DNA of 64,000 bases from Mytilus californianus (GCF_021869535.1 NW_026262604.1:34782001-34846000); one strand, 5' to 3'; positions 18,036 through 59,129 are shown, counted from the first letter of the stretch. Notes: a model not told the origin generated them from the sequence alone. Numbers and translations are program-made.

Positions 18036-18454
18036 TCTTCAACTAAATGGTTATGAATCTATTGCATACAAGCATTTTATTCAGAACTATATAGTAGAAA
18101 TTAATTAGTTGGCACGAGGACCCTCTTTTACTCTTTTATTATAGTGTCCATGACATATTTGAACTCAACAATGGTTAAGTTACATTTAAAGTAAAGAACA
18201 ATAATCAGCTTTTCATGATCAGTTTTTATCAACAAAAATATGAAGATGTGGTATGATTGCCAATGAAAGACAGGCAATCTCTCGGCATGTGCAATACTAT
18301 ATAATATATACCTTCTCATTCTAGTTACCTACAGGGATTAAAATGAACCGCCTCGTGCCGATTTGCCTCTTCCCGCAAATGATTTATATGTTCAATACGG
18401 CTGAAACGTTTCTTGTACATCCCCATTGTTTGTTTTCTTAACAGTTTCAAAATC

Positions 18455-19118
18455 TAATGCATTGTAAAATGTAATAGAAATACCAAAAGAAAAGGTTGCC
18501 GATTAAATTGATTGTTGTTGGTTGCTTAACGTCCAGTGGCAAATATTTCATGCATATTCAGGACGAGAACAAATTAACAATAAATATAATAGGTAGGTTC
18601 TGTAATAGTTGCCGATTAAAGATACCATCTTATATACAATTATCTCGAAAAAAAATGACCACTTTAAGGTAACTTTTAATGCAGTAATCTTTAAAAAGTG
18701 GTCGAATCTGGTAAAAATAAAGATAATTATCAGTCAAAAATATGACCGATTTAAGGTTACATCTGATACAATTATCTATAAAACATGACCGATTTATATT
18801 TCATCTAAGGCAATATTCTATAAATAGTGGTCATTGATGTATAGATATATCTACTATACGTATCTATAAAATATGATCGATTTAAGGTTACATCTAGTAA
18901 ATAATATATTTAAAGTGGTCGAATCTTGTCAAATGTAATATAGTTATCAACAAAAATGGCCGATTCAAGTATACATCTAATACAATTATCTATAAAAAGA
19001 AGTTGTCGATTTAAAGTTTAATCTACTACAATTTAAAAAAAAAATGAAAAAAAAATGTAGAATTTATTGAGAAAAAATAAATCTATTAAGAAAGTGACTG
19101 ATTTGATGTAAAATCATG
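18455..19118 (-). repeat. Satellite patch, same family as 48700-56693, opposite orientation
   Basis: Repeated GACCGATTTAAGGTTACATCT, the reverse complement of the main-array motif. Confidence 0.85.
18508..18607 (-). mobile_element. 5'-truncated SINE copy (tail only)
   Basis: SINE 3' end flanked by the 13-bp TSD GTTGCCGATTAAA (18495-18507, 18608-18620). Confidence 0.88.
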
Positions 19119-19119
19119 T

Positions 19120-20568
19120 AAAACCTAAACATTCCCCTGAATGCCTCTGCCCTATCTCCCAACTCTCCCATTATGGCTGCCTGGACCCTCCAGTCAATGA
19201 GGGCTCAAGGAGAGTTAACCGGCGCTGTCGAAAAGTATGGGGGAACTGGTCGTCCCCCTTCCAGGCATACTTCTTCCATCTGGCCCTGGACTGCCTGCCC
19301 AATGATGTGGGGTCGGGTTATTGCCAGCCTATTAATGTGGGTAACCAAATCCTCTAGGTCCCCATCCACTAGCATCCAGGCTTGTGCTTGTAGCGCTGCT
19401 ACCCTGATTGGTGCGAGGGAAGCCCTTGATGGATCGGATGATTCTCCGAATACTTCAGCCACATGTTCCAGCATCACATGTGGCTGAATATCCAATGCCC
19501 TTATGGGGCAACCCTGGATTGGGCACTGCTGTAGGGTGGGGAGGTTGCTCTCCCTTGGCGGTGTAGGTCCTTGGGGTGTCCTCTGGCCTGACACCCCAGT
19601 CTCCCTCAGCTGGTAGTCTGGTTGGGGTGTCCTTTGACTTGACACTCCAGTCTCCCTGGCTTGGTGGTTTCCTTGGGGTGTCCTCGGGCCTGACACCCCA
19701 GTCTCCCTCCGCTGGTAGTCTGATTGGGGTGTCCTTTGACTTGACACCCCAGTCTCCCGTGCTTGATGTTTTTCTTGAGGTGTCTCATAGCCTGACACCC
19801 CAGTCTTTCTCCCTGTGTAGTAGTTCAGGGGTGTCCTCTGTCCTGACACCCCTGTCACCTTGGACGTATAGCCACGTTGGGGTGTCCCTTGCCACGACAC
19901 CCCTGTCCCCCTCCTTCCTCCTCCCCGGAATGAGCTCTGTGCGGACACCCCTGCTCCATCCCTTGCTCCGGACTGGGGTGCCCGCCTCTCTTGGGTCTCT
20001 CTGAGGGCCCTCTGCAGTCTGGCCATTTCTCCTGCCTGGCGTTCTTTCTGCCTATTCCTCCTCCTCTTCCTCTCCTGTGTAGTTTCCTTACTACCCTGAA
20101 AACCCCTACCCAGTGGAGGCGCGCTGTGAGCATCCCGGTCGGCTGGAATGCCCACAGGGGTGTCCCTAGCCATCGGGACAGCGGCCCCTGGAGTGCTCCT
20201 GGAAACGGAACAGCGGCTCCTTCCTCCACTGGGGTCCCTAACTGTACCCTCCCTACTGCCTGACCGAGCCCTTCCCCGGGAACTGCGGCTCCCATCCCTG
20301 GTGTTCCTGACTGCCCCAGAACCCCACTCTAGACTTGTGTCTCCAGCCTTTGGGGAGGAGTCCCTGTGGTCCCCATAGATGGCTTTTCCTGGAACCTCAG
20401 CTTCCCCCCTTGGGCCTTGGGCTCTCCCTGGTTTGGGATACCCCTTTCAACTGAGGGGACCCTATTTTGGTGTCGTCCCCTGGGGCTTACCTCTCTCTCT
20501 TCTTTCTTTTCCTCGGCAGCCCAACTCCTCTTCGGGCTGCCCCCAGTGCTATCATCATCACTGGACAT
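19120..20568 (-). pseudogene. Gypsy ORF3 (env position): basic low-complexity N-terminus, tandem repeats, CP..GC..H motif; truncated
   Basis: ORF pieces 20329-20637 and 19205-20173; in-frame stop at 19205 followed by ALIDWRVQAAIM. No signal peptide or TM segment seen. Confidence 0.7.
19570..19900 (-). repeat. About 54-57-bp coding tandem repeat (TGVSGQRTPQ...RE), 5-6 units
   Basis: GGGGTGTCC...TGACACCCC recurs regularly. Confidence 0.85.
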
Positions 20569-20762: not shown

Positions 20763-23607
20763 CTATTCTGAACCCTTCCTACGGGCTGACCGCAGTCCAG
20801 TAGGGTTCAGACTAGCTTGTGGTGGATCTGGTCTATTTATTTTTGTCTTACAACCAGAGCATACATAGTCCTGGTTTTCCCACTCTTCAGCTTCCCGTGG
20901 AGAGATTCCCACGCACCTACCATGGTACCACTCATTGCACTTGTCACAGGAGATCATAAACTCTCCCGTATAAGGTCCTCGACAAATGCAGTACAGTGCC
21001 CCAGTACTTCCCGTGGAGGCATTTGTTTTCCTGCCCTCAGTTGATTGTAGGGTGGGGGCACCAGGTCCACCCCGACAGCACCTTGAACGCTATCTTGTGA
21101 AGGGGTTGCTGGGTTATTAAGTTGCATTGCTTGGGCCACCCCTCCCTTTTGAAGCTCTACTATTGCCCGATTTACCCATGCTGGTAGCTCCCTATCCCTA
21201 CACAGCTTTAAACGGTCGTGGTTTACCGTGGTGAGGGCTTTCTTCATTTTTACCTTATAAAGGTAAGGGGATATCCTTTCAAGGATGACCCCTGGTCCCC
21301 TCCACATAGGGCTTAGCTTCTTGCACTTGCCTGGTAGTGAAGCTGTGTCCAGCTTATAGATAACGTCCCCTACCTTGTACTGACGGGCAACTACCCTGAG
21401 ATCGTAAGCTTGCTTAGCTCTAAGTTGGGAGGTCTTGAGGTTTGCCCTCGCAACCTCATGGGCAGACTGTATGGCCTCTTCCAAGTCACCCACATAACCT
21501 GCCAGGTCTGGAGATGGCCCTGTTTTTGGTGGCCTGAACATTAACTCAGCAGGGAGGTTTACCTCTCTGCCCAACATGAGGCGATTGGGGGTAAACCCAG
21601 TGGATCGATTCACTGATGCCCTAATTGCCCCCGCTAATTGGGGAATGTGTAAGTCCCAAGTTTTCTGATTGGTCCCCACAAAACACCTGATGGAGGCCAG
21701 GAGGGTGCGATTAAATCTCTCCACCTGGCCATTAGCAGAAGGGCGATATGGGGTGGTCCGAGCCTTGTAGATGTGGAGCAGCTCACAAACTGATTGGAAG
21801 AGTACTCTCAAAATTTCGTCCCTGGTCTGTAAATATTTCGTATGGATACCCAAACCTACAGAAAAAATCGTTAACAGCCGCCCTTGCCGTGACTTCAGCC
21901 GTCTGAGAGGGGAGGGGGATACACTCCACCCACTTGCTGAATTGATCTACAATCATGAGCAGGTGTTCATTTGCTCTATCTGACTTTGGTAGGGGCCCTA
22001 CAAAATCGAGGTGCACTCTCTCCATAGGAGCCCCAGCATGAAACATTGTCATTGGGCACCTTGCAGTCTTATTCGGTTTCTTGCTCTGGTTACATGCCGA
22101 ACAACTTGCTACATAGCCCTCCAAGTCCTTTTTAAGCCCATGCCAGTAGTAAAACTGTTTTACTCTTTCTTGGGTTCTAGTCATGCCCTGGTGCCCAGCT
22201 GAGGGGATGTCATGGCATAATTCCATAATGTCCCTCCTCCATTCTCGGGGCACCAGCAACCTGTTTCCCTCTCCATCTTTTGCATGATACATTATCATTC
22301 CCCGTCCATCCCTACTGAACCGTTCCTTGATTGTCCAGTAAAATTTTGCTGGTTGGCTACTCCGGAACAGGTCCCCCTGAGCAGGTTGACAACTGTTATC
22401 GTCAAGCCACTCAGTGAGCCACTTACATTCAGGGTCTTTGCTCTGTGCGTCACAAATTTGTTCAACAGAATATTTCCCTAACACCACCCCAAGCCCATCC
22501 TGGACAACCCGGATGGAACATTCTGGGTCGTCTGGGACTATCACCACATCTCTACCTACAGTGGCCACTGTCACCCGTGATATGCAAATACCCTTATCAG
22601 CTGTTTTTGGATCGACAACCGGTATTTCATCTAAAAACCCAACCTCTGCAGAATCTTGGCCAGTTACCAGTATTTCGTTTACAGATCGTCCCCCCACACC
22701 TGTTCCTTTGGATGCCAATGGGATCACGTCATCCACATCGGTCATAAATTTAGACCACTGTGTTTGAGCCCTTGCACAGTATGGACAACCCCCACAGGGC
22801 AGGGTTGCCAGGTTGACATCGATTTTAAAGTCCTGACATGGAGAGTAATAGGCATTCTGGACAGGGCATCCGCGTTTATGTGCTTGGAGCCCGCCCTATG
22901 TCGCACCTCCATGTGATATTGGCTCAACTCCTCGAGCCAGCTGCCCTTGAGGCTGCTTAAAGCGAAGCAGCCAGGTAAGGCTACTGTGGTCTGTGCGGAC
23001 TACAAAATTCCTTCACAGCAAGTAGTGCCGGAACTGTCTGGTGAAGCGTACTACTGCCAGGAGCTCCTTCCTGGTAGTGCAGTACCGCCTTTGCTCTGGA
23101 GTTAGAGTAAAACTGGCATAGCAAACTACCCTTTCCTCGCCGTTTTGTATTTGGGACAAAACTGCCCCTAGTGCATAGTCTGAGGCATCTGTGTCTAGGA
23201 TAAATGGATCAGAGGTATTTGGTAGGGCCAGTAGGGGTGCAGAGGTGAGAGCCTCCCGCAATTTATCAAATGCCTCCTGCTGTGTTTCCCCCCATGTGAA
23301 AGACCTTTTGCCTGTAACATCTTGAAGGGGGCCTGCGATTTTAGAATACCCCTCAATGAAAGCCCGGTGATAGTTGGCGAACCCCTGAAAACGTTCTACA
23401 GATTTAGTATTGTGAGGGGTTGGCCATTTCTTCACATCCTTTATATAGCCGGGGCCAATATTCATACCCTGCCTGCTCACTACTCTGCCAAGGAATTCTA
23501 CCTGTTCTTGAAACAGTTCACATTTCTTTGGCTTGAGCTTGAGGCCGTATTCCCTTAAGCGCTGTAAGACTGCCCTCAGGTTGGCCAGATGAGAAGCTAT
23601 ATCTTTT
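20763..23607 (-). pseudogene. pol: Gypsy pol 3' part: RT C-terminus, RNase H, integrase (H2C2 and DDE core)
   Basis: FILDTDAS, YCTTRKELLAVV, KHINADALSR, CHDIPSAGHQG, HLDFVGP, FTDQGRNFES, NGQVERFNRTL. Confidence 0.95.
20847..20996 (-). pseudogene. PHD finger downstream of the integrase
   Basis: LYCICRGPYTGEFMISCDKCNEWYHGRCVGI...DYVCSGCK gives C4HC3; one frame off from the integrase ORF. Confidence 0.9.
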
Positions 23608-23816
23608 CCCAGAACCCAATCTAATTAAAATTAAATCTCCGCACTTGCTCCTCGTTGTTTATATGTCGCGCGTGGGAGATCTAACAACAGCCGCTTGAGG
23701 GTCATGTCTAGGGTCAAATTTGGTGAACTTTGACCGACCAATCAGCGTGCAGAAAATCAATTTCGATTAACCAATCAGCGACGGGCTTGTATACCATTAT
23801 CGGATCGTTAAAAAAC

Positions 23817-26800
23817 ATGGATGCGCCCAGTTTGGACAACGTTTTGACAAAAGTTTTGCCAAAATTTGGTATAAATGATATAAAGAAGTAGCAAAAGGAA
23901 ATTTTAGAGTGTTTAGTTAACAAGAAGAAGTGCGTGGCTGTACTCCCGACTGGTTTTGGCAAGTCACTGTCGTTTCAACTGTACCTTCCAGTTGTCCGGG
24001 AGGTTATTGAAAACAGTTCTGACTGAAAAGTTTTAGTCTGTTGTCCCTTAGTAGCTCTGATGCAGGACCAGGTGGAAAAACTCGCGCACATTGGAAATAT
24101 TACTGCTGCATACAAAGGTTAGTGTAACTTTAAGCATGCAGTGGTAGTAAGGCTTCAATAAATGGAATAGTCTATACTATAGTATTTAATGCCATTAAAC
24201 ACCTAATTTATATTATAATTATTATGTTGGCAGTGTTGTATATTAAAGATGTTTATACCACATGAGAAATCAGTTAGGGAGTGACATGTTATCCCCCTGT
24301 ACAGTGGCGGATCTAGAACTTTTTGTAAGGGGGGCCCACTGACTGACCTAAGAGGGGGCCCCGCTCCAGTCATGCTTCAGTGATTCCCTATATAATCAAC
24401 TATTTTTCCCACAAAAGTGGGGCCCAGGCCCCCCTGGATCCGCATATGCTGTTGGAGCTTCTTATTTAATTAATGCAATGCCTCTATCTTACAAAAATGT
24501 CTTAAGATGTTATTCCCACACCTTATGGTGTCTAGATGCAGGGCCCCCTTTTCCATAGTCCTGGATCCGCATCTGACCAGGCAAAGATGTACATGTATGC
24601 CTTATTAAATAAAATAAAATTTATTTGCAGGAACATACATTTTAACTTCAGTATATCAACACATACACATGACTAACAGTAACAAAGCAGTAATATGAAA
24701 CTTAGATATACATGAGCAAAGTTAAAAAAAAACTGCAGAAGCAGTTGATCATAGCCACGGTAGCACATAAATTTGTCTCATTTCACTGAGAACAGATTGT
24801 ATCGGTCATATTGCCAGTATTTTACAGTCGTTTTGGCCATAATGCTAGTTCTTCATACTTTGTATAAAGATACATGTATATACTACATGTTGTATTAATG
24901 AAGCACCAGAGTCCAAGGGAAATGTTGTTAATTACATGTACTAATAATCTATCTCAAAACAAATATACATGCATATAAGAATAAGAAGATGTCGTACATG
25001 TACAAGACTTGAAGTAAAATTGCCAACTCAACTCTCCACCAGACAACAAATGACAAAGTTTACAACTATAGGTCACCATCTGACCTTCAACAATGAGCAA
25101 AATGATACAGCATAATTAACTACATGGCTCAGAAACGTGCGGGAAACTTAATTTTTAAATTAGATTGTTATTTGTCATGTTTGTGTTCAGGTGTTAAACA
25201 ATGAAAAAATAAAAAAAAAAATATGAAAAAGTGCAGTCTAAAAGACCTTGTTGGATGGCCAAACAGATACATTGGCAGAAACATCTCAAAATTGAGAAAA
25301 TATGCCATGCATTTATTGAAATCTCAGCTATATTCATTTCTGTATTGGACTTTACAACAATAAGAATTATTTCATTGGATTTCAATCTTTAATCAAACGC
25401 AGTGAAATGGAGAAAGGGTATTTGTACAGTGTACATTTAAATTATAGAAGTTATCATAGAAATATGTCTTTTTGGAGACTGCCCACCTACATTTTTTTTT
25501 GCATTTTAGGGTCATCTTCACCAGAGTGAACGGCCTAATTTATGCATAAAAAATGAACGAAAAACAAATACAAATGTATGTAACACATAAACAAATGACA
25601 ACTACTGAATTACAGGCTCCTGACTTGGGACAGGCACTATACAGAATGTGGCAGGGTTAAACATGTAAGCGGGATCCCAACCCTCCCCTAACCTGTGACT
25701 GTCTGTCAATCGTCCACCTGTCAGACAGTAACTCAAAAACTATTCAACTAATTAGCATGAAACTTTGATGAATTGTTTCTATATATTGATGTGTACTCCC
25801 TTCCCATTTTTATGAATTTAGATTTTCAAAAATATAGAAGTAAAAAATTAAGACCACTGGTACAGAACTGTACAGCTTTCAAGAACGAGATAACCTAATA
25901 CTAAAAAGTAAGCTCTTTTAAGACCACTACTTGCAAAATGATGAACCATTACAATGTAATTATAAGAATGTATGAAAAATAAAACCCTAAACAAATGTGA
26001 TAGACAGCAACCAACAACAACCACTGAATGATAGGCTGTTACATAACAATATGGACAAGCACATACATGTATTTAATTTTGTTTTGCCAAAAGAATTAAC
26101 AATCTAGGCAAGAGGTGCTGATATTTACCATTTATAAAAGTTTTTATAGAAGTAATTATTTCTATTTTTCTTTCAGGGGCCAAGATGAAGGAGACAGAAA
26201 AAAAGGCTTTTCGAAAATGGTTTTCTCTTTTCCGATGCTACAGTATTGGCTTTAAGTGCAACTTGCACTGTAAGCTTTAGGAAAAAAGTCATGAAAATAT
26301 TGCAGCTAGTGGAGGACACAACAGAAATTAATTTATCACCAAACAAGTCTAATATTAAACTAGTATCTTCCAAAATTAAAAATTAAATTGAAATTGGAAT
26401 GACATGGTTAGTAGATGCATTAGATGAAAAAAGTCAGGACTTCCCACGTACACTTTTGTATTGTTCATCGATAAATGACACTTCCAAACTTTATAAATAC
26501 ATTGTAACAGAATTGCCACATTGTGCCAAGTATATTGAGATGTTCCATTCTGAAACTCCAGATGTTAACAAAAACATCATAATTAATGCATTGAAGGAGG
26601 AAAGTAGTGATTTGAGACTTATTTTGTCAACCAGTGCCCTGGGAATGGGTTTAGATGTAAAAAAGTGTAGTGGAGTGGTATTATTTGGACCTCCAAATAA
26701 TCTGGTAGATTTGCTGCAAGAAATAGGGCGAGTGGGGAGGGATGGAAATCCATCAGTTGCCATTATCCTATACAATGGATACCACTTGCAGAAGTTGAAA

Positions 26801-27127
26801 CCGGAAGTTAAGGCAATTCTTAAAGCTAAAGATTGTAGGAGAAAGGATCTGATGTGTAATTTCCTCAGAAATTCAGACTTGGATGATTTGATGAAGAAAG
26901 AAAGCAGGAAACATTCATACCGTGACTTGTGTACTAAGTCTTGTAATTGTGAATCCTGTGATATGTTACCTCTTGAGAAGTTATTTCTGTCAGAACAAGT
27001 TGTTGAGGAGCTCGAGGAGCAAGAAGATTCTGCTGTTTCAGATAGCGATACTGAAGACTACAATTTGTCGGCCTATGAATACTTCGAAGATCTTGATATG
27101 GCTTTATTAGAAATACAAGATGATTAA
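23817..27127 (+). pseudogene. RecQ-like SF2 helicase of AcademH; exons about 23817-24117 and 26177-27127
   Basis: LPTGFGKS (Walker A), PLVALMQDQV, LALSATCT, STSALGMGLDV, QEIGRVGRDG, CRR. Stops at 23889, about 24025 and about 26385; the DExH exon was not found. Confidence 0.85.
24302..24448. mobile_element. MITE with CAGTGGCGGATC..GATCCGC termini (hAT-like)
   Basis: Short imperfect terminal inverted repeats. Confidence 0.6.
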
Positions 27128-27709
27128 AACAGTTGATATTTATTTATTTAATTTTTCAGTATCTGGTTTCTGTTACTTATTCAACTTTAGACTCTTCAAA
27201 TTTTTTTGACTTTGAACCCCCTTACAATTGCTGTATTGCCACTCTAGATCTGGGTTCATGTCATGCCTGCAGCTGTCAATGGGACTAAAAAGAGATGTAG
27301 CGTATAAAAACAAATGAGACAGTAACTGATTGACACACATCATAAGATATTTACTTTTTTTCATCTTAAAAATAAAGAGATGCGGTATGATTGCCAATCA
27401 GACAACTAGTACCCTCCAGACTTTTCAATAACTTGATATAAGCAATTGTAGAACAACGAGAAAAACCCATGCCTTTAGTCGGCTACAAAAGGCCCCGACC
27501 AGAAAAATATGAAAAAATTCAAAAGAGAAAACCATGTCTGTCATGTCCGTCAGATATGGTTGCAGATTCGCCTAATCTTGACCTCATTTCATGAAACAAG
27601 CATATAATAATATTAGGGGTCAAGTCTGCATCTCGATTACTATAAACATGATAAACAAACAGAAAAATATATTTGGTGTGGAATTATTGTAAGATGTACA
27701 TGTTATATA

Positions 27710-28095
27710 AAAAGAAGATGTGGAATGATAGCCAATGAGCATGATTAGACAACTCTCCACAAGAGACCAAATGACACAGAAAGTAACAACTATAGGTCAC
27801 TGTACGGCCTTCAACAATGAGCAAAGCCGATACCGCATAGTCAGCTATAAAAGGCCCTGAAATGACAAATGTAAAACAATTGAAACAAGAAAACTAACGG
27901 CCTAATTTATGTACAAAAAATGAACGAAAAACAAATATGTAACACATAAACAAACGACAACCACTGAATTACCTTAAGGCTCCTGATTTAGGACAGGCAC
28001 ATACATACATAATGTGGCGGGGTTAAACATGTTAGCAGGATCCTAACCTGGGACAGTGGTGTAACAGTACAACACAGGAACGAACTATAAAAATC
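27710..28095 (+). repeat. Abundant interspersed repeat (AAGATGTGGTATGATTGCCAATG family)
   Basis: Related pieces at about 25030, 25520-25720, 27380-27530, 38185-38480 (minus) and 42575-42960. Confidence 0.75.
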
Positions 28096-28526
28096 ACTCT
28101 GGTTGGTTTTTGACCTTGACTTTTCATGGTTTATTGATCAACAAGTCAACTATCTTTGGTGTATAGAATTATTGCTATTGATGTATGTCCTTTTGTGCTA
28201 AGTTTTGGCATGGTTCATATGACATGTATGACTTTGACCTTTTTGTTCATTGTTCTTGATGATGTTATATTTGTTCTATATAGCAAACTCATTGTATTTA
28301 ACTTGGTGTAGCCAACAGTATACATAGAGGATGATTATTTTTGCTCAAAATAAACATTGACAGGTTGATTGATTATTGATTTCTTCACTTGGGTTTCAGT
28401 GGCAAATATTTCATGCATATTCAAGACAATAACATGAAGTGGGACTATATCTTACTTACAACTTTGTTCAAGACCAATGTGTTCATCAAGAAAACAGTCA
28501 AATATAGACTTAATACCACATCTTCT

Positions 28527-29288
28527 TTTTTATACGACCACAAAATAATTTTGCGCAGCGGTCGTATATTGGTATGACGTTGGCGTCGTCGTCCGAAGAC
28601 ACATTGGTTTTCGCACTCTTACTTTAGTTTAAGTAAATGGATCTCCATGAAATTTTACCATAAGGTTCAATACCACAAAAGTAAGGTGGGGATTGATTTT
28701 GGGGGTTATGGTACCAACAGTTCAGGAATTAGGGGCCAGCAATAAGCATTTTTGTAACTTCCAGACATTACTTGTGTGTTAGTGTATGGATCTCTCTGAC
28801 ATTGTACCACAAGGTTCCATATCACAAAGGGAAGGCTGGGATTGATTATGGGGGTAATTGCCTCAAAATTTTAGTAATTAAGGGGCAAAAAACAAGTATT
28901 TTTCTAGTTTCATGACAATAACTTGTGTGTAAGTGTATGGATCTTTCTGAAATTGTACTACAAGGTTCCATATCACAAAGGGAAAGCTAGGTTTGAGTTT
29001 GGGGATAATTTCCCTAAATGTTTAGGAATTTTGAACCAAAAAGGGGCCAAAAAACAAGCATTTTTCTAGTTTCCAGTCAATAACTTGTGTTTGAATAGGT
29101 AAATTAAAAATTTATAAGTTCTTAGACCACATTTATTCTGTGTCAGAAACCTATGCTGTGTCAAATATTTAATCACAATCCAAATTCAGTGCTGTATCAA
29201 GCTTGACTGTTGTGTCCATACTTGCCCCAACTGTTCAGGGTTCGACCTCTGCAGTCGTATCAAGCTGGGCCCAGCAGAGCATTTTATT
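28527..29288 (+). mobile_element. Helentron-associated non-autonomous element (HINE-like) with about 150-bp internal repeats
   Basis: TTTTATACGACC...GGTCGTATA terminal hairpin, GTCGTC motif, AAGGTTC.ATA.CACAAA recurring three times. Confidence 0.65.
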
Positions 29289-29929
29289 ATATTAAGTTAC
29301 TCTTGTTTAATTTGACTAAGATAGAAATTGAACCAAATAATGTGCACTTATAACTTCATCACTCAGGAAAGCACATTTAACCAACACCACCTTGTATAAG
29401 TTTTATCAACAGCTCTTTACCAGTACATATAGGGTATATATCTGCATGCTGGTCGCCTTGTGAACAAATCTGTAAAAGTTTGGTTTTTATCTCATTTTTA
29501 AATATTTTTTTTTGTACAAACGTGCTTGATGTTTTCATAAAGTCATTTCGGGTCTTTGTACAGCTTGCTATAGGTTTTACTCAAAGTCAGAGGTGGAACT
29601 GTGAACTTTAATACAGAAAAATAAGTTGGTCCCTTTTGAATAGTTGTCTCATTAGAAATCAGGCCACATTTTTATAAACATGTTTTTGTAGGTAGTTATG
29701 CTGCCTAATCAAAATGACCATGATATTCTGCAACTAAACTGAAAGTATTTCATTACTTTGTTTGTTGGGTTGATGTCTCATTGACTTATGACACTTTAAT
29801 ATCAGCAACAAACTACTAAAAAAGTACCAGCTAATTAAGGTTATGACTTAAGAGAAAATCAAACCTGCACACTTTATTCACAATAATTTAATTCCAAGCA
29901 ATATTTTTCAAATATGTGGATTTGAAGGC

Positions 29930-30690
29930 GATGGAAGGGGACTGTTGGTTGATGTCACGGCGATGAATCAATGTACGAAGTCCTATAAATGCACTGTCAA
30001 ATGGGTTTTTGTCTTTTTTTAGCTCCTTGCACTTAATTGTTATTATTCTTGAAGTTTTATATGTTACATGTAGTACATTTTCTTGTAGTAGGTCTTTTGC
30101 AATTTTCTGAACATCAGCTTGGTATGACCGTATATGGTGGAACCCCTTCTTTCCTGTTAAATTGGTAATTTTATCAAAATGGCTTGCAAAATTAACTAGG
30201 TGAGGGTTGAAGGATACTTTCCTTTGTCTGATGTCCTGAACATGTTACTTTTGTATCCTTGTTCAACATCTCTCAAGTGTTCATCTAAGCTTATTTTATT
30301 GTTTGTTCCTCCTTGCAGATTAACAAATCTATTAGCAATTAATCTTTCTGATTGGTCAGGTGATAAGACACCCGAAGTTAGTCACTTAGTTCTTCTTGAA
30401 TTTTTAATGCATCTTTCTTTAATTTGATTGACTGTTGGACTTTTCTCAAACATTTAATACAGAAGCCATTGTCATTGTCTACTTCGGCGTTTACTTCAAA
30501 ACCAGTAACAACACTAGAAATTATTGCGATTCTCTCTGAGTTCTGCTGAAGTTTCAGTTTGAACAGTTTTTTTTCAACACGTTCTCCCGTTGAGGAGATT
30601 TCTATCTGGATGAAAGAAAAACCGCATAAAACACAAATGTTTGTTCATACTGATATTTTCCTTGGAGTGCATACTTCACTTGATGCCATT
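29930..30690 (-). pseudogene. Academ transposase relic, N-terminus joined to C-terminus by a deletion
   Basis: MASSEVCTPRK..NICVLCGFSF followed directly by NRFVNLQGGTNNKISLDEHL and HIRSYQADVQKIAKDL. Confidence 0.7.
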
Positions 30691-32680
30691 TTAACCTCGG
30701 AAGGCAATAATACAAACTATTATTACAGTTGTATGTTACGAAACGTTTTTCGCATGGGGGCTGCCATTTTTGTTTATATACATTCGGAAGACCTCTAGAC
30801 GCTACTAAGACTCCTATGCCAGTCCAATACCCTAACACTTTGTAGCACCTTCGCTGATTGGCTACAGCAAATTTGACCCTAGACATGACCCTCAACCGGC
30901 TGTTGTTAGATCTCCCACGCGCGACATATAAACAACGAGGAGCAAGTGCGGAGATTTAATTTTAATTAGATTGCCCAGAACCAAAATGTCATCCAGAAAG
31001 GCCAACACTATATCCCAGGTTAACCCCCTTAGAACCAAGCTTATGACCCTGGCATAAGTAGCTGGGGCATTACAGAGCCCAAATGCCATCCTGGCAAACT
31101 CAAAAAGGCCGTATTTTGAAATAAATGCGGTTTTAGACCTATCCTCCTTCTTGATTTTCACTTGCCAATACGCTGAGTTAGCGTCCAGCTTAGAGTACCA
31201 TCGATTCCCTGCAAGGGTATCCAGGCACTCTTCTACTAACGCTAAAGGAAATACGTCCTTTACACAGGTAGCATTCAAAGCCCTATAGTCAATGCACCAC
31301 CTGACCCCCCGTCCCTTTTTCTTACCAGTACTGGGGCAGAGCACCATTCAGAAACTGAAGGCTGAATGACCCCCTGCCTCCAACATTTTCTTTAAGTGGG
31401 TCTCCTCCTCTTGAGCAAACCCAATAGGGGTTCTTCTCATTCGTTGCTTTATTGGGGGGTGTCCCGCAGTGTCAATTTGGTGCTCAATGGTCGAAAAGTT
31501 CCCCAAATCAAACTCACTTGCTGCAAAGACATCCCCGTACTACCTTAACAGAGATGCCAAGGCTTCTTGCTCTTGGCTTCCCGGTAGTGCCTTGGAGCGA
31601 TCAAGGAGGTCCCTGAGATGCTCTGTGACTCCCTGGTCCGACTCTGTTGAGCCAGTACCCACCCCTGTACCTACTACTCGTACCTTTGCGGGGACCTCTA
31701 TGGGCTCCACCTCTACTGCCTGGGCAATTAATTTCCCCTGATGCACATGTACATGCTTATCTGAAGTATTTATCAGACACACTACTGGTTGGCTCCCCCC
31801 TGCATGTAAAGTGCGGGGAACCAAAAGACCAGAGTGACTGCCTGCCTCGACAATGTAACTTGGCATTTCGCAGTTGACCTGACAGCTGAGCTTCATCACT
31901 GAATTGGGCGGCACCGTAATTTTATTACGTATTGTCACATTAGCTACCCTGGGTGCCTGCCCGACCTTACCCATAGTCATGGGTATGACCTCGTCCCCTA
32001 CCCGCAGCTGTCCATCGGACATTTGTAAGTCGATACAATGTACCCTTAATAAGTCAAAACCCAACAGCATGTCGTCCTCTATATGGGCCACGTACAGATT
32101 TGTCTGTATAAGATTGGAACCCAGTTCCAAATTCACGGGCCCGACAACATACCCGTTCATTTGCATCCCCTTTCCTGCTGTATTCATGATGACTTCCCTG
32201 AGGATGGGTGGGACAGATTTTAGGGACCTGTATACCTCTTCTGATATAAGGGTCACTTCTGCCGCAGTGTCCACTACGGCAAACAAACTCTGCCCCTGAA
32301 CTTTAATGGGTACCCTAAATACCGTTCCGGAACGGAGCTGACAGACAGTGACTATCTCACAATCGTTCTCCTCATCCACTAATGTGGTGTCTGCTTCCCC
32401 CTCTGAAGAGGAGGCCCCACTGTTATGGGCTTCCTCATTATTTTCTAGGTCATTATCAATGGTTCTTACCGCCCTGAGAGGGCTATGGCCTTCAGTGGAG
32501 TCCCAGTTACCCTGGGGTTCTCCATAACTGGCCATAGTTACTGCTGCCGGGCTTGTATCTTCGCGTTCAAACCATAAGCTCCCTGATATTTCTCCCCTCT
32601 CCTCACCCCCAGGGTCCCCCTGATCTTTGGTAAGCACTGACTGAACAATAGGGCGTCCAAATTTGATTTGTTCTCCAGGG

Positions 32681-33241
32681 TCTAGATGAACAACCCCCAT
32701 AAAGAACTTGACGGGCAGGACTCCTGCCTGGTTACCTGGGCATAATATAGCCCTACTGGGTGCCCAAAAGAACTCGTAACCCTCGGCCTGAGCCCTTGGT
32801 ACATCTTTCATTATCTGTACTTCCCAATGAGGCTTGAAGGTAGGGGGTACCTCACTCAATAGATGAATGTGCTGTCTATTCATCCGTCTCAATCCTTCCT
32901 CTTCTATATCCCCCCCAGGCAAGCATGGTTGTGTAGTGGTAGGCATGGGCAACAGTGTTTTCCTCTACTGAGGGCATACCAAAAGATCCCACTTCAATGG
33001 AATGCCCCTGGTTTGCCTTTATTTTCCACCAACCATGATCTTGGTCCCTCTCTAAAGTGAAACGTTTGTCCACGTCTACCCCAACCAAACGGGTGAGCTC
33101 CTTAAGGGTGTACCCCGACAACCCTGGGTGCCTAGACAGGAGCTCATCAACATACACAAATCCCCCAGGGAGAACCTTGAGTCCCCATTTACTGGCACCA
33201 TGCCGCAACACATATATCAGTGTTTTTGACAAGTGACGGTC
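32681..33241 (-). pseudogene. TRPT1: Tpt1/KptA (TRPT1-like) NAD-dependent RNA 2'-phosphotransferase domain within Pol
   Basis: LSKTLIYVLRHGASKWGL..GFV, DKRF, IKANQGHS, HYT...W.DI..EGL..MNRQHIHL, D..RAQAEGYEFF, ILCPGNQAGVLPVKFF. One extra G in a G7 run at 32910-32916. Confidence 0.92.
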
Positions 33242-33540
33242 AACTCCATGGTCTTGAATGACTTCCTCCTCTGAATCGGAGGAAGCATTCTCCTTATCCT
33301 CTAATGGGCACTCAGGCGCTAGTTTAATTACAGACTCTGTGTCCTGGGTGCCCTCCCCTTCAGACTCTGTGTCCAGGGTGCCCTCCCCTTCAGACTCTAA
33401 TGATAACACTCCCTCTGCCTCTTGTATTTTTATGGGCATTACCTCTTTCCCCTGACAAACTGATTCTAGACCATGATATCCCAAGGTCACTTCCCCCACA
33501 TTTTGATCCCTAAACTGCACATCTGTTGACAGGCCAGACT

Positions 33541-35677
33541 CTATTTTTGGGGGCTTGCTCTGACCTGTGGAGCTGCCCCGTTGGAGTTTAACGAATTTGG
33601 TGTTGTACGAGTTTGGTCAGCAAAAGTGACAGTTCTCTCTTTAGACCGCAGATCTGGGCACTCAATTCGAATATGCCCAGGCTTATAGCAGTGATAACAT
33701 ACACTTTCACGCACAGACCCTCGATATGGGGATGGGCTTCTTGATTGTGACCTTCCCCTAAATTTTGGGCAGTCCCGTTTGAAATGTCCTCTCTCCCCAC
33801 AGTGGAAACATTCTCCTGTAGCTGGCCGTCCGCCCGGTGAGGGGCTTCTTGCCAGAGGGCGAGTGAGGAGTTTCCTAAATTGGTCCATCATGTCATCCAA
33901 TTTCTCATGCACTTGACCCAACTTATTTTCAAATTTTTTATTGGCTATTCCAATTCACTTTTCCAAGTACTCGCTGGGGCCCTCTCAGGGGCCATAGTAG
34001 CCCTTACCTGCGGTACCTGGTACTCATGGAACACCTCTGGGTGGTCGTCATACCGGCCACCCATTACCTGCCTAACCTCACGCCTAGTTGGCTTCCCATA
34101 TATTGCCTGGGTATTGTGCTGGAATAGCCGTATTTTATCTACGGCCTCCTCTATGCTTTGGGGCTGGAGATTTGAGACTTGCACCCCCAACTCTTTGTTT
34201 TCAATACCCTGGCACAGCCGCATTACGGCCTGCTCATACATATAGTCATCAGGGAGGTTTCTAAAGGCCCTGGTGGCCAAGGACAACACCCGATCAGCCC
34301 AGTCCTCGAGAGACTCCTCAGGGGCTTGCCGGGCATTGTTGAACTGGACCCGGGCGGTCTCAGGGAGTGCCTTGAAACCAAAGCGCTTGTGGAGCTTCTC
34401 CACAAGCTCCTTATAACTCACCTCCCTGTCTCTTTCCGTTATGAGGGCATAATACTCGCTGGCCTTCCCCTCAAGGCACCAGCAAAGTTGGTCTTTACAT
34501 TCCTGCGGACCCCATTCACAAACCTCTGCGTACCTTGCAAATTTTGTGAAAAAGGCCTGCCAGTTGCCCTACCCGTCATACTTAATATTTTTTGGGGCAT
34601 TGCTAACTTTAGAGACTGCACCTAAAGTTGCTCGTGCCCCACCTCTGCTGTCAGGTCCCCTTATGATTTCCCTGGGCCTATCCTCATTGTGTGGCATTGG
34701 GTAAGCATGTTGCCCGTAGCTTCCCCCGGTGTAGACCCCTTGTGGGGGCACCGGTGTAGACCCCTTGTGGGGGCACCGGTGTATACCCTTGGTTGTACGG
34801 ATTATGGGATTGCCTATCCCCATAGGCACAGGCAGGGGTCCGCCTTTGGTCCTCACCCCTGTTGTTTGGTCTTTCTTCATACATTGGGGCTGGAGCTTTT
34901 CTGGAGTCCTCGCCCCTATTGTCTTGCCACTTGCCATACCCGGGGTGTTTCATACTGTCTCCCACCAGTGTGAGCTGGTTGGGTACAGGGTGCTGACCCC
35001 TGACCTGCATAGTTAATTGTGTGACCCATGGGGTATGAAGGTGCGCCCCTTTTGGTTGGGACGGTTTTGTCCCATGCACTGGCTTTCCCTGGCCAGTGCT
35101 GTTTGGTCTTAATACTACTCCCTTGATGTTGGGGATTACCTTGGTTTGGGTCACCCATAATAGGTTGACTCCACTCATTTTTTGTAATTTGTTCCCTGAA
35201 TCCCCCATCCCAATTTTCGGGGGTCTTAGGTCTAGCTCCAGCATCCCCGGGATATGGGCTACACTCAAGAAAGGCAGAGTCCATCTGACTGGGCCCGGGA
35301 CTTTGCCCCTGATGCCATGCCTCTTGCTTAAATGCTGATTGGACATGTACCCGTGAGGGGGTGCTTTGTGAGGCAACGTGTCCCCCATCTATTAGTGTGT
35401 TAACCCTGCTCAACATTTCATTATGCCTGCCTTGGGCCTTAGGTGGTGGCCCACTATTTTGGCCACCCCCATTTTGATTGAAGTCAAGTCTGGACAAGAG
35501 GGCCATTGTCACTCGTAGATGGGAAATTGTGGCTAGGTCTGACTCAGTCACAAAGCCCTTGCCCTCCCTTATGTCCATAATTTGCTCCCCAGTTTTAATT
35601 CCTATACCTGGGAGCTGAAGTAACTCTTGAAAGCTACAAGTGTTTATGTTTATAATGGACATTGTAACTGTAAACAA
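33541..35677 (-). pseudogene. gag: Gypsy gag with N-terminal helix-hairpin-helix and two CCHC knuckles; frameshifted
   Basis: ININTCSFQELLQLPGIG (HhH), PKNIKYDG, RQAPEESLEDWADRV, CFHCGERGHFKRDC, CYHCYKPGHIRIEC. Confidence 0.9.
33547..33592 (-). promoter_or_regulatory. Putative -1 programmed ribosomal frameshift signal (gag/pol)
   Basis: G TTA AAC (33592-33586), 6-nt spacer, then hairpin GGGGC-A-GCTC-loop-GAGC-AA-GCCCC; pol is in the -1 frame and open from this point. Confidence 0.7.
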
Positions 35678-36187
35678 TTAACACTGATTTTCAACAAAGT
35701 TTATTTATTTATCAATAAACAACAACAACCAACACTTTTAATAATACAGATGGTTTTATTTTATTTTATTTTATTGAATAACAAATACTTCCGCTTTGGG
35801 TAACCCGTCCTTCTGGTCTGCGGTTAGTAGCGGAAGCGAACAGAACAATAATACGACTGGTAACCCGTCCTTCTGGTCTGCAGTTATCAGAGGTAAACAG
35901 AACAATAACAACACGACTGGTTCCCCGTTCCTCCCAGGTCACGTGATCCAAGTCGTCTTGAAAATACGAAAAAACAACAAATACTCAATACTACGCTAAA
36001 AACAGGGGTTCTACCGCGCTGCAAAACCCCTGTGATGTTATGTAATATGCTCTCCCAGAGTATTACACAACAAAAAACGATCGGCAAAGGTTTCCCCCGA
36101 ATCCTTTACCGCGGGAAATTCTGTTGAAGCGAACCTCGCCTCAACTCACAAAATGAGCCCTATATTGCAAATCACCACGCAAATTAG

Positions 36188-36201
36188 TGCTCGCAGCGCC
36201 A
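36188..36201 (-). promoter_or_regulatory. Primer-binding site, probably tRNA-Ser
   Basis: TGGCGCTGCGAGCA 1 nt after the LTR end; complementary to ...TGCTCGCAGCG-CCA, similar to the animal tRNA-Ser(CGA) 3' end as I recall it. Confidence 0.75.
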
Positions 36202-36202
36202 A

Positions 36203-36620
36203 TGTTGTGATCCCGAGTAAATATATGAACTTACCCAAGACGCTTCTTGGCGTTGATCGCTTAGATGGCTTTCTGGTATAATTTGGTGACTGTTGTCTTG
36301 ATTTTGGTTTACCGGAAAAAGAGAGAAGGCATCATGGGATCGGGCAACTTCCGGCAGGGTCTGGCTTAGTACCAACGAATACCACAACAACATACCAATA
36401 GAATAGTTCAGATTCAAAGTCAAACCAAGTTATTAATCTACGAAAGATACCAAGACCACATAACAACAACTACTTCCGGGTTCTAGGACCCGAGTCTCTT
36501 GTTTCTTAATTCAGTGAGGCGATAAAGTGTTCATATCTTAATTCGCATTAAAACATATATTTATGCAATTATATTTATGCAAGACAACATACAATATTCA
36601 CATTTAATCATTTCCTTACA
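36203..36620 (-). repeat. 5' LTR (about 418 bp, TGTAAGG...CACAACA)
   Basis: TG...CA ends, adjacent PBS. The outer end is inferred because no second LTR is available for comparison. Confidence 0.7.
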
Positions 36621-37050: not shown

Positions 37051-37478
37051 CCCCAAGGGTGACTGGGGAATAGAAGTATGGTCACCATTGGTCTTCCTCC
37101 GACCGGCGGTAAAACCCTCGTCAAAGTGGGGCGTCCGTTTGGCTGTGCGGGATGTACAAATTTGCAGCCACGTCCGGTCAGAATGGGGACGTTAAATCCG
37201 ATGCCCCGTGTAAAGAGAGTGCCACGCTCTTTGCACGTTAAGAACCCTTGCAACAACTCTTTGAGGGGTCCGTAGTTGACCTGTTGCAAGGCTAAATTTC
37301 TGTCCCTATCCAATATACCCTCATTTCCCGTGGCAGTCTAAATTTCTCCGACCTTAATCCCTTAATCTATTACAGAACCTACCTATTGTATTTATTGTGA
37401 ACTTGTTCTCGTTCTGAATATGCATGAAATATTTGCCACTAGACGTTAAGCAACCAACAATCAATCAATCAATCAATC
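37051..37478 (+). mobile_element. SINE copy
   Basis: Same sequence as 2865-3286 from CCCCAAGGG to the AATC tail; no clear TSD. Confidence 0.9.
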
Positions 37479-41045: not shown

Positions 41046-41496
41046 CCCCCATCCCCCCCCCCCCCCCCCCCCCCCCAGGGTGACTGAGGAAACGAAATAT
41101 GGTCACTTGGTCTTCTCCCGACCGGCAGTAAAACGCTTGCCGAAGTGGGGCTTCCGTTTGGCTGTACGGGATGTATCAAGTTTGCAGCCACGTCCGCTCA
41201 GAATGGGGACGTTACATCCGATGCCTCGTGTAAAGAGAGTGCCACGTCTTTGCACGTTTAGAATCCTTGCAACAACTCTTTGAGGGGTCCGTAGGTGGCC
41301 TGTTGCAAGGCAAAATGTCTGTCCCTATCCTATATACCCTCATTTTCAAGTGGCTGTTTAAATTTCCCCGACAATTATCCCGAATGGCCTCTATTATGAC
41401 AAGACCTACCTATTATATTTATTATTAACTTTTTCTCGTCCTGAATATGTATGAAATATTTGCCACTGGACAATAAGCAACCAACGATCAATCAAC
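41046..41496 (+). mobile_element. SINE copy (second subfamily) with expanded 5' C-run
   Basis: Diagnostic variants CACTTGG and AAAACGCTTGCC; imperfect TSD GTGTTATC(C/A)TTT. Confidence 0.88.
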
Positions 41497-42363: not shown

Positions 42364-43628
42364 CTCATAGTTTGCAATTCGCTGCTTGATAGACAAAGGA
42401 TTATTGCACGCAGTGCTAGCAATAATTAAATAAAAAACAAGTTTATGAATTTAGATATTGGTTTAAACAAATATAAATATTGACCAATGAAAGTACACCT
42501 TCACGGTTGCGCTCGACTTAAGTGTCTCAGCACGTGGTTGTTCAAGAAAATCAAGTGAGTAATCTATAGATATAGGAAGATGTGGTATGAGTGCCAATGC
42601 GACAACTCTTCATCCAAGTCACAATTTATAAAAGTAAATCATTATAGGGCAAGATACGGTCTTCAACAGGGAGCCTTGGCTCACACTGAACAGCGAGCTA
42701 TAAAAGGCCCCATAATTTACTAGTGTAAAACAATTCAAACGGGAAAACCAACGGTCTAATCTGTATATAAACCAGAATCACTTATGAAGCACATAAACAG
42801 ACGACAACCAATGAACATCAGATTCCTGACTTAGGACAGGTGCAAACAATTGCAGCGGGATAACACGTTTTAATGGTACCAAACCTTACCTTCTCCCTTT
42901 CCAGAAACAATAGTATAACATCCCAGCATAGAAAGACTCTCTATAAAATATCAATTGGAAGGCATAACTCAATCAAAAATCGTAGTGACACAAATTACCT
43001 CATCTGTGTCTGCTTTAAATTTTATAACAAAAGTGTCTGTGTTAAAAGTCTGGATTTTCTATAAAAATCTTGGTTTATTTGCCACAAAATCCCGTTTAAC
43101 TATTGAATTCAATGAGACTACAAATAAAAAATGCTTTGCTCGAAGTGTCCCCTTTATATATGTACAAAATGGCCCATCTATATTATATTTGCTGTTTTTA
43201 TACTATTGCAGTTTGAAAATTTCGTAATTCAAAGGCTACAGAAGGGGTCATAAACCTTAACTTGTTTTTTTATGTACGACATTTCTTCTAACTTTGCGTT
43301 TTTGTCCAGGAATTTTGTCCTTAGTCCAGAAAGCTTGGGAATTTGTTATTTAAGAATTGAGTTTACATTCATCAGCAGATTGTGAACGTTTTGCAGAGTT
43401 AATGGTGAACAAACACTATACACTGCATTTGTCATTTCTCTTATGCATTTTTTCCTTTGCCATTTCTGTCAATTCTGTTTGACATTCTTCCTGAAATTCA
43501 AAATGGTCTTCTGTTTCTGAGGTAATACATTCTGGAATTATGTTAACTTATTGGCTGAGGAGACTGCTTTTTTAGTTATATCACTATCCAGATTAAATAA
43601 TGGTAATTTGTGTATTCTGATGGTAAGA

Positions 43629-44054
43629 TTGATTGATTGATTGTTGGTTGCTTAACGTCCAGTGGCAAATATTTCATGCATATTCAGGACGAGAACAAAT
43701 TAACAATAAAAACAATATGTAGGTTCTGTAATAGGGGCGTCAGGGATTAAGGTCGGAGAAATTTAGACTGCCACGGGAAATGAGGGTATATTGGATAGGG
43801 ACAGAAATTTAGCCTTGCAACAGGTCACCTACGGACCCCTCAAAGAGTTGTTGCAAGGGTTCTTAACGTGCAAAGAGCGTGGCACTCTCTTTACACGAGG
43901 CATCGGATTTAACGTCCTCATTCTGACCGGACGTGGCTGCAAATTTGTACATCCCGCACAGCCAAACGGACGCCCCACTTTAGCAAGGGTTTTACTGCCG
44001 GTCGGAGGAAGACCAATGGTGACCATACTTCTATTCCCCAGTCACCCTTGGGGG
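43629..44054 (-). mobile_element. SINE copy
   Basis: 14-bp TSD TTCTGATGGTAAGA (43615-28, 44055-68). Confidence 0.93.
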
Positions 44055-59040: not shown

Positions 59041-59129
59041 GAACAATATCAGCACCTTTGTTAAAAGTTCTGTTGTAGAACAAAATCAGCACATTGGTTC
59101 AACATACATTTTACACATTCTGTTATTGA

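Follow-up and report, generated by a model that had tools for sequence, protein, structure and literature searches.

The role of the NAD-dependent RNA 2'-phosphotransferase Tpt1/TRPT1 in animals and bacteria has long been an open question, there being no known source of RNA 2'-phosphates (PMC6333775, PMC6097658). Domains of this family, named KptA, have been described embedded in the polyproteins of the Botrylloides leachii nidovirus and the Beihai picorna-like virus (Iyer et al. 2022, PMC9503650), in a paper whose text contains neither the word 'retrotransposon' nor the word 'retroelement'. LTR retroelements are in their turn known to carry accessory domains: dUTPase, chromodomain, DnaQ-like exonuclease and DNA methyltransferase (PMC6338049, PMC5890265). 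Macro domains and 2H enzymes belong to the same chemistry, the former reversing nucleic-acid ADP-ribosylation and the latter processing the product of Tpt1 (PMC9503650, PMC6582358).

We describe here a Tpt1 domain within the Pol region of a Gypsy retrotransposon. Comparison of related loci shows that the domain is an integral, selected part of an element family and not a passenger of the copy in which it was noticed. The literature searched, which did not include Repbase Reports or most subscription journals, yielded no description of Tpt1 or TatD as part of a retrotransposon; the occurrence of Tpt1 in a reverse-transcribing element is thus probably undescribed, while accessory Pol domains and the KptA of RNA viruses were already known.

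Layout of the element and its Tpt1 domain

The DNA analysed, called the window below, is a stretch of 64,000 nt from Mytilus californianus (GCF_021869535.1 NW_026262604.1:34782001-34846000) that is free of N, with positions counted from its first letter; neither it nor the other loci compared showed anything resembling human sequence. The window holds a decayed copy of a Mytilus mussel LTR retrotransposon, a Ty3/Gypsy element of 11-12 kb; this copy lies on the minus strand and runs from 36387 down to approximately 19124 (Table 1). Read along that strand, the copy consists of an LTR, a sequence resembling a primer binding site (PBS), an HHH_3 domain, a gag capsid region, two CCHC knuckles, a -1 overlap, an acidic linker and Tpt1, followed by protease (PR), reverse transcriptase (RT), RNase H (RH), integrase (IN) and the opening part of a third ORF, which contains 51-bp repeats. 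The Pfam domains thus occur in the order that marks Ty3/Gypsy elements, CCHC Gag and then PR-RT-RNase H-IN, and the same order is found in elements of M. galloprovincialis (L004) and M. edulis (L007) and in P0028, a protein of metagenome contig L001.

The 5' LTR of the window is recognisable solely through comparison with M. galloprovincialis L004. Direct-repeat and blastn searches revealed no 3' LTR or LTR pair in the window, and no second copy of the element is present there. The PBS-like sequence occurs once in the window, against 0 occurrences expected by chance; no tRNA gene was found in the window, and the primer tRNA is unidentified. The HHH_3 segment is frame-shifted with respect to gag in this copy, while in M. 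edulis L007 it lies in one 709-aa frame with gag and the knuckles. Gag itself was identified by its Pfam profile scores (Retrotrans_gag, E 6.7e-4; zf-CCHC, E 6.2e-11). An A-rich stretch lies immediately upstream of the gag stop, within the overlap. The gag stop, the -1 overlap and the frame relation are common to the window and to L003, L004 and L005, from which programmed -1 frameshifting is inferred, and the linker that opens Pol is in the same frame as Tpt1 in L003, L004, L005 and L007.

Downstream of the protease, the region of P0028 that matches window positions 22745..23624 carries RT_RNaseH_2 and RT_RNaseH. The third ORF runs on in L004 and L007 into a TatD_DNase domain (Pfam E 1.1e-37) that lies within the LTR pair; in the window the alignment to these fuller copies ends at approximately 19124, and both the 3' LTR and the last part of ORF3 are absent. 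The RT is interrupted by a nested DNA transposon of 7.4 kb, bounded by 109-bp terminal inverted repeats (23617-23725 and 30865-30973, 98% identical), flanked by an 8-9 bp duplication of RT target sequence and holding a Helicase_C fragment at 26399-27127 (+). Because of this insertion, the 3' truncation and further frame breaks (ORF1 and the integrase each occupy more than one frame), the window copy is dead and unable to function.

Table 1. Features of the element copy in the window, listed from its 5' end
Feature	Position	Strand	Remarks
5' LTR, ~185 bp, TGT...ACA	36203..36387	-	Aligns to both L004 LTRs (7039-7235, 18366-18560)
PBS-like sequence starting TGG, one base past LTR end	36187..36201	-	Kept beside the 5' LTR in L002, L004, L005
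ORF1 N-terminal part with helix-hairpin-helix (HHH_3)	34919..35677	-	Pfam HHH_3 E 2.1e-8
Gag	33544..34568	-	Capsid-like 33948-34568 and two CCHC knuckles 33544-33954, in two different frames
gag/pol overlap	33544..33616	-	pol open in -1 frame 72 nt upstream of gag stop
Acidic, repeat-containing linker opening Pol	33242..33616	-	80-83% identical in L003, L004, L005, L007
Tpt1 N-terminal (RNA-binding) lobe and start of NAD lobe	32915..33241	-	LRHG, KRF, ANQGHS, HYT
LRHG	33208-33197	-	Tpt1 motif
KRF	33067-33059	-	Tpt1 motif
ANQGHS	33016-32999	-	Tpt1 motif
HYT	32938-32930	-	Tpt1 motif
Frame break in Tpt1, homopolymer G run	32910..32916	-	Frame 1 to frame 2 change
Tpt1 NAD lobe, remainder	32683..32913	-	GL, R-x-HIHL, PGN; donor loop SGMR deleted
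NRQHIHL	32880-32860	-	Tpt1 motif
Retropepsin-type aspartic protease	32044..32313	-	Pfam gag-asp_proteas E 3.2e-7, residues 214-303 of ORF 31540-32952
RT, N-terminal part	30974..31347	-	Pfam RVT_1 E 3.9e-17; 92% identical to L004, 66% to L001
DNA transposon nested in RT, separate from the Gypsy element	23617..30973	.	Inverted repeats
RT C-terminal part and RNase H	22745..23624	-	94% identical to L004
Integrase, two overlapping frames	20957..22895	-	Aligns to L004 genes with Integrase_H2C2 and rve
ORF3 N-terminal part	19208..20446	-	71-91% identical to L004 and L007; 51-bp tandem repeats 19568-19924

A full Tpt1/KptA domain (Pfam PF01885, PTS_2-RNA) occupies positions 32683-33241 of the minus strand, between the gag/pol -1 overlap and the protease. 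Of its two pieces, the upstream one (ORF 32876-33520) matches profile positions 4-113 of 177 with E 1.4e-21 and 77.8 bits, and the downstream piece (ORF 31540-32952) matches positions 115-177 of 177 with E 2.3e-5 and 24.9 bits, so that the downstream piece alone falls slightly below the gathering score of 26 bits. Since the two pieces together tile the whole profile, we regard the domain as complete but split by one frame change; it was read as its two pieces or with an X at the break. Sister copies that are intact reach 118.4 and 124.9 bits, in each case over profile positions 4-177. Among solved structures, mouse and human TRPT1 (7YW2 and 7YW3) are closest in sequence to both pieces (E 7e-11, 1.5e-7), and the downstream piece aligns to TRPT1 residues 138-212 with a gap of six residues. 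The copies L004, L005 and L007 are in frame across the position of the break in the window, which may be a real mutation or an assembly error, two possibilities that cannot be told apart without reads.

The domain had been proposed by a first-pass annotation made from sequence alone, and most of what that annotation claimed was borne out. A Tpt1/TRPT1 domain in Gypsy Pol was confirmed by a strong PTS_2-RNA profile match; the translation of 32681-33241 (-) is as described, ending in out-of-frame stops, and the coordinates given for the arginine-histidine pair, KRF and the MNR arginine held to within one codon. The placement of the domain between the frameshift site and the protease also held, the gag stop and 72-nt -1 overlap being conserved in the window and L003-L005. 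An extra G in a G7 run was confirmed as a frame break inside 32910-32916; the further claim that this is the only lesion held for the domain and failed for the element, which has the nested transposon, the 3' truncation and other frame breaks. The SGMR segment, described as apparently replaced, is in fact missing, through a six-residue deletion relative to canonical TRPT1 that is common to the whole Mytilus lineage. Four outcomes had been named that would overturn the proposal: no profile match, a domain unique to this copy, catalytic residues not conserved among copies, and prior publication. None of the four was met. The domain is not unique to this copy, since it recurs in an equivalent position in Gypsy elements from at least three Mytilus species and on two metagenome contigs; the Arg-His-Arg-Arg set is retained, the tetrad being invariant among diverged copies; dN/dS, suggested as a check, came to ~0.15-0.34; and the literature searched held no such report.

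Spread, constraint and origin of the domain

An exhaustive HMMER search with the N-terminal Tpt1 piece returned 754 proteins at E <= 0.001. The top matches are Mytilus gene models named 'TRPT1' that are 94-98% identical to the window piece and that also hold gag, zinc-knuckle, HHH, protease or integrase segments of the element. We compared the DNA of seven loci (L001-L007). Two are whole elements between LTRs, from M. galloprovincialis (L004, 87% identical) and M. edulis (L007, 85% identical). The M. coruscus locus L003 is partial, with HHH, gag, knuckles and Tpt1, and ends in the linker before the protease. Two are short derivatives with gag and Tpt1, each with a 4-bp target duplication, from M. 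coruscus (L002) and M. edulis (L005). The remaining two are metagenome contigs with unbroken ORFs, one of 1325 aa that encodes Tpt1-PR-RT-RNase H-integrase start (L001) and one of 1549 aa that encodes RT-RNase H-Tpt1-integrase (L006).

The order HHH-gag-CCHC, -1 overlap, linker-Tpt1-PR-RT-RH-IN was found in both whole elements, L004 and L007, and in L003 as far as that locus extends; in L007 the linker, Tpt1 and PR lie in one 648-aa frame. Further features of the element family are the HHH domain of Gag and an ORF for a TatD DNase. In L001 the RT is 59-66% identical to that of the window, and Tpt1 is canonical in every motif, matching PF01885 with E 3.6e-54. The RT of L006 is only ~40% identical, and because its Tpt1 lies between RNase H and integrase we take L006 to be a second architecture in a distant Gypsy lineage. 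LTR pairs were found in L002, L004, L005 and L007, 85-94% identical, and no target-site duplication was found at L004. Since every Mytilus copy examined is decayed and the LTR pairs are no more alike than this, recent activity of the Mytilus elements is not shown.

These findings also explain several Mytilus gene models that bear the name 'TRPT1' or 'tatD' and are in reality fragments of retrotransposons.

Two further scans did not extend this distribution. When IMG/VR was scanned with the Tpt1 alignment, all hits were Tpt1 genes of phages and giant viruses (25-36% identity) and none was a retroelement, and a metagenome scan with the N-terminal half of P0028 returned nothing useful. Proteins with tandem Tpt1 domains, at first assigned to bivalves, are protist, fungal or metagenome sequences.

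Constraint on the domain was assessed in an alignment of 25 sequences, comprising the element domains and cellular TRPT1s from animals, fungi and a slime mould. In all 25, the retroelement ones included, LRH, the R of KRF, A-x-x-GH, H-x-T and R-x-x-I of R-x-HIHL are invariant, as is the GL motif region with Ile and Gly before GL. The Arg-His-Arg-Arg tetrad (LRHG, KRF, R-x-HIHL) is present in the window and invariant throughout this alignment. Between Mytilus subfamilies that share 55% protein identity, dN is 0.32 and dS ~2.1, a ratio of ~0.15; this is the most informative comparison, and in it dS is saturated. Among close copies dN/dS is 0.31-0.34, a value that blends selection with neutral decay after insertion. 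Both comparisons are likely to reflect constraint, and neither is a clean test of it.

The fold was modelled not on the window copy but on an intact counterpart from M. edulis, P0295:419-634, which shares 96% identity with it. The model has a mean pLDDT of 89.4 and superposes on human TRPT1 (7YW3) with TM 0.82/0.86 and rmsd 2.0 Å; it predicts that the intact sister copy keeps the two-lobe Tpt1 fold, with a winged-helix RNA lobe and an ADP-ribosyltransferase-type NAD lobe.

The NAD site of the Mytilus lineage is altered. In TRPT1 the H-H-h motif is made up of the His of HGT, the second His of HIH and the hydrophobic residue of N-x-V (PMC10415124), and the window satisfies it through a histidine from each of HYT and HIHL and, where TRPT1 has Val, an Ile. 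The Ser-Gly-x-Arg donor loop is lacking, the six-residue deletion removing GVISGMR in all copies of the Mytilus lineage. HGT reads HYT or HCT in this lineage, N-x-V reads R-A-I in the window, with the Asn lost in the window subfamily, and the L002 subfamily additionally lacks the HIH histidines. P0294 lacks SGMR and keeps N-G-V. By comparison P0028 has every canonical motif, including HGT, GVISGMR and N-x-V. For mammalian TRPT1, changing the donor-loop Ser/Gly to Trp nearly abolishes ADP-ribosylation, a double-alanine mutant of N-x-V is lethal in yeast complementation, and the N-x-V nicotinamide contact is dispensable for ADP-ribosylation of 5'-phosphates (PMC10415124). The Mytilus lineage may thus have a constrained but modified Tpt1 whose chemistry has perhaps shifted, and it cannot be excluded that some or all Mytilus copies are catalytically altered or inert; there are no enzyme assays. 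Judged from its sequence only, the L001-type Tpt1 looks fully conventional.

The Tpt1 of L001 (P0028) is 50-58% identical to the TRPT1 of Ptychodera, Branchiostoma, gastropods and Lingula. Host mollusc TRPT1 genes are long (690-1016 aa), mostly number one or two per species and form a clade of their own (P0020, P0026, P0058, P0046 and others; support 83/86). The Mytilus element Tpt1s form a separate clade (support 100/99) on a long stem branch, and the domain thus derives from an old capture of an animal-type TRPT1 rather than from a recent copying of the Mytilus gene. The tree is unresolved at depth, and an AU test did not reject a single clade for all retroelement Tpt1s (p 0.33), so the tree does not decide between one capture and two. 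The two domain positions and the ~40% RT identity point to two capture events or to a relocation. The Mytilus hosts also possess their own TRPT1, so the element's need for a copy of its own is unexplained.

Possible functions of the domain

In the model that we prefer, Tpt1 would be made within Gag-Pol, would co-assemble into the virus-like particle and would then be released by the protease. Packaging and proteolytic release were already proposed in the first-pass annotation and remain inference. The packaged enzyme would use cytoplasmic NAD+ on phosphates of the element's own replication intermediates, and the reaction that we favour, as a conjecture that is less likely than not, is the ADP-ribosyl capping or removal of 5'-monophosphate ends. 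RNase H cleavage leaves 5'-phosphate ends. The RNase H of the element would generate them on primers and at the two termini of the linear cDNA; once capped or dephosphorylated, these 5' ends would be unligatable and would resist 5' exonucleases and end-joining into dead-end circles. The 3'-OH ends, the only ones that integration needs, would stay free.

The chemistry that this would require has precedents. TRPT1 ADP-ribosylates 5'-phosphorylated nucleic acids (PMC10415124, PMC6582358), Tpt1 is able to transfer a DNA 5'-phosphate to NAD+ (PMC12678800), and capping or removal of 5'-monophosphates on RNA or DNA is known for TRPT1 and archaeal Tpt1 (PMC6582358, PMC10415124, PMC12678800). We prefer the 5'-end model because an RNase H of the same polyprotein makes 5'-phosphate ends, because the Tpt1 of L006 sits between RNase H and integrase, and because the window subfamily has lost a contact that is needed for the 2'-phosphotransferase reaction and not for 5'-end modification. 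These arguments are indirect: the choice of 5'-end capping over 2'-phosphate removal is inferred, without biochemical, expression or proteomic data. The functions suggested by the first-pass annotation, capping or protection of ends and healing of the tRNA primer, likewise have no experimental support yet. As a whole, the explanation that a selected Tpt1 resides in Pol, with 5'-end capping as its preferred though inferred function, seems to us to have a modest edge.

The alternative that survives best is repair of template or primer, which remains possible. Here packaged Tpt1 would clear the genomic RNA or the tRNA primer of internal 2'-phosphates. These would be left wherever a ligase of the 5'-P type had rejoined RNA cleaved by host RNases, and their removal would let RT pass. 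In support of it, P0028 is canonical in all Tpt1 motifs, HGT, GVISGMR and N-x-V among them, RNA-end repair was proposed by Iyer et al. for KptA in the polyproteins of invertebrate RNA viruses (PMC9503650), matches by fold to a Melipona virus protein and to the Botrylloides nidovirus replicase are in line with that proposal, and the PBS-like sequence starting TGG points to tRNA priming. Against it, nothing in this analysis documents a mollusc pathway that would produce 2'-phosphates, the window subfamily lacks the Asn of N-x-V, a motif whose double-alanine replacement in mammalian TRPT1 is lethal in yeast complementation (PMC10415124), and the identity of the primer tRNA, including whether it contains an intron, is unestablished.

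A second alternative is that the domain of the Mytilus lineage is a noncatalytic pseudo-enzyme, kept as a Gag-Pol module that binds phosphate ends or RNA, for instance in RNA packaging or primer positioning. The six-residue donor-loop deletion, the change of HGT to HYT or HCT and the altered N-x-V speak for this, as do a TRPT1-profile score of ~140 bits, compared with 280-330 for canonical domains, the long stem branch of the Mytilus element clade and the absence of SGMR from P0294 as well. However, all four catalytic residues, together with both NAD-site histidines, are kept across subfamilies that are only 39-55% identical (the L002 subfamily, without its HIH histidines, excepted), an invariance that would not be expected if binding alone were selected; the structural model is of high confidence for the fold and for the NAD lobe; and P0028 is canonical. 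We consider this alternative unlikely.

That the domain is a neutral passenger or an artefact, a transduced host exon or an assembly chimera without a role in the element, is favoured by Mytilus host gene models labelled TRPT1 that merge element fragments and by the broken state of the window copy, but it is largely refuted and very unlikely given the constant placement of Tpt1 at six or more loci (drawn from three species and two metagenome contigs), the unbroken Tpt1-Pol ORFs of 1325 and 1549 aa, dN/dS well under 1, invariant active-site residues and an element clade that stands apart from host TRPT1 genes.

The preferred 5'-end model allows a bolder version, which we offer as no more than a possibility. 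In this version the element would carry a kit for processing nucleic-acid ends, made up of HHH on Gag, an NAD-dependent Tpt1 and the TatD nuclease ORF, with Tpt1 capping or removing the 5'-phosphates left by RNase H on cDNA and primers. If true, this would be the first physiological role for 5'-phosphate ADP-ribosylation by an animal-type Tpt1, and would add to retroelement replication a step not described before, one that the two positions of the domain would show to have been recruited on at least two occasions.

Comparison with known systems

The 5'-phosphate ADP-ribosylation activity of Tpt1 has no assigned role. A selfish element that keeps Tpt1 under purifying selection beside enzymes that make 5'-phosphates offers defined candidate substrates and a testable prediction, and the mussel elements are in this respect a natural setting for asking what animal-type Tpt1 is for. 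They add an enzyme of the ADP-ribosyltransferase fold to the short list of accessory Pol domains, and the Tpt1, TatD and HHH modules together make for an unusually equipped bivalve Gypsy lineage.

Animal TRPT1 (7YW3, 7YW2) shares with the element Tpt1 the two-lobe fold, the tetrad, ANQGH and R-x-HIHL, with 32-34% identity to the Mytilus type. TRPT1 is a free cellular protein, whereas the element Tpt1 is embedded in a retrotransposon Pol, and the Mytilus element lineage differs further in being without the SGMR loop, in having HYT for HGT and in its altered N-x-V. From the long host TRPT1s of molluscs (700-1000 aa) the element Tpt1 differs in falling outside their clade.

Coronaviruses and other RNA viruses have macro and 2H phosphoesterase domains, which belong to the same network of NAD and ADP-ribose chemistry, but these act downstream of the Tpt1 reaction or against it, and Pfam domain annotation found no macro or 2H domain in the mussel element. 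The known accessory domains of LTR retroelements resemble the Tpt1 of the mussel family in being extra, non-essential gag-pol domains that were captured and kept in a lineage, plausibly for replication or host conflict. None of those listed is a Tpt1 or an ADP-ribosyltransferase, and the mussel family adds HHH on Gag and a TatD nuclease ORF.

The KptA of invertebrate RNA viruses is alike in that a Tpt1 lies in the replicative polyprotein of a parasite with an RNA genome and a marine-invertebrate host, and the element Tpt1 gives a fold match to the Botrylloides nidovirus replicase with E 1.8e-12. The viral carriers are without reverse transcription, whereas the mussel carrier is an LTR retrotransposon with DNA intermediates.

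Position of Tpt1 and the gag/pol junction

The Tpt1 domain occupies a second position in Gypsy-type elements as an accessory domain, shown by a distant element on an ENA metagenome contig that encodes an unbroken 1549-aa ORF (P0294) in which Tpt1 lies between RNase H and integrase. Within the Mytilus family, short derivatives from M. edulis and M. coruscus, bounded by LTRs, are flanked by 4-bp target duplications (CAAA, ATGT), and the deletion in the M. edulis derivative leaves the TatD portion of the third ORF (ORF3) joined to the end of Tpt1. A conserved C-run/A-run stretch is located immediately 5' of the gag stop codon, with pol open in the -1 frame, in the window copy, in the partial M. 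coruscus copy (L003), in the M. galloprovincialis copy (L004) and in the M. edulis derivative (L005). Inferred from sequence alone, this stretch is a possible slippery site of a form other than the classical X XXY YYZ heptamer.

Coordinates of element features and window repeats (L002, M. coruscus; L005 and L007, M. edulis; L006, metagenome contig; PR, RT and IN, protease, reverse transcriptase and integrase)
Feature	Location	Strand	Remark
gag stop region	window 33544-33560	-	equivalent site in L003, L004, L005
HHH_3 (ComEA-like helix-hairpin-helix) domain	window 34919-35677	-	Gag N-terminus
HHH_3 counterpart, within the 709-aa frame	L007:9986-12112
ORF3	window 19208-20446	-	N-terminal, repeat-rich part alone retained
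ORF3 homologues	L004:16590-17930; L007:17646-20127
Short derivatives	L005:7135-12363; L002:7095-12030		HHH-gag-Tpt1 retained, PR-RT-IN absent
Distant Gypsy-type element	L006:1419-6068
DNA transposon in RT gene	window 23617-30973		109-bp terminal inverted repeats, 98% identical
Helicase_C fragment in transposon	window 26399-27127	+
Tandem repeats in transposon	window 28618-29042		roughly 150 bp
SINE-like repeat sites	window 37051-37474; 2866-3289; 41072-41495; 43627-44053; 59125-59547; 63668-63937
SINE-like repeat fragment	window 18507-18608

Additional domains of the element

In the element family, ORF3 is located 3' of the integrase, within the LTR pair, and carries a C-terminal TatD-family DNase domain (Pfam E 1.1e-37). 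Mytilus has multiple copies of homologous ORFs, which bear annotations as host 'tatD' genes; the literature searched contained no description of a retrotransposon with a TatD nuclease. The whole M. edulis element has a single 709-aa frame comprising HHH_3, the capsid domain and zinc knuckles. An HHH of the DNA-binding type is unusual as part of Gag.

Other repeats in the window

The DNA transposon nested in the RT gene has a target duplication of 8-9 bp. Six or more positions in the window also carry a SINE-like repeat of ~425 bp, with 86-97% identity between copies.

Protease-TRPT1 paralogues and host TRPT1

In three proteins from M. trossulus and M. edulis (P0290, P0022 and P0292, the last representing 17 sequences), a long TRPT1 of the host type is preceded at its N-terminus by a retropepsin-like protease domain that shares 30% identity with the Gypsy protease. 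The TRPT1 part shows about 63-66% identity with the host gene P0020 across ~520 aa. These may be host-element chimeras or, alternatively, merged gene models. Mollusc host TRPT1 proteins (P0020, P0058, P0046, P0043, P0027 and P0035) have large conserved N- and C-terminal extensions without a Pfam match and, at 690-1016 aa, are far longer than the TRPT1 of most animals (~200-250 aa).
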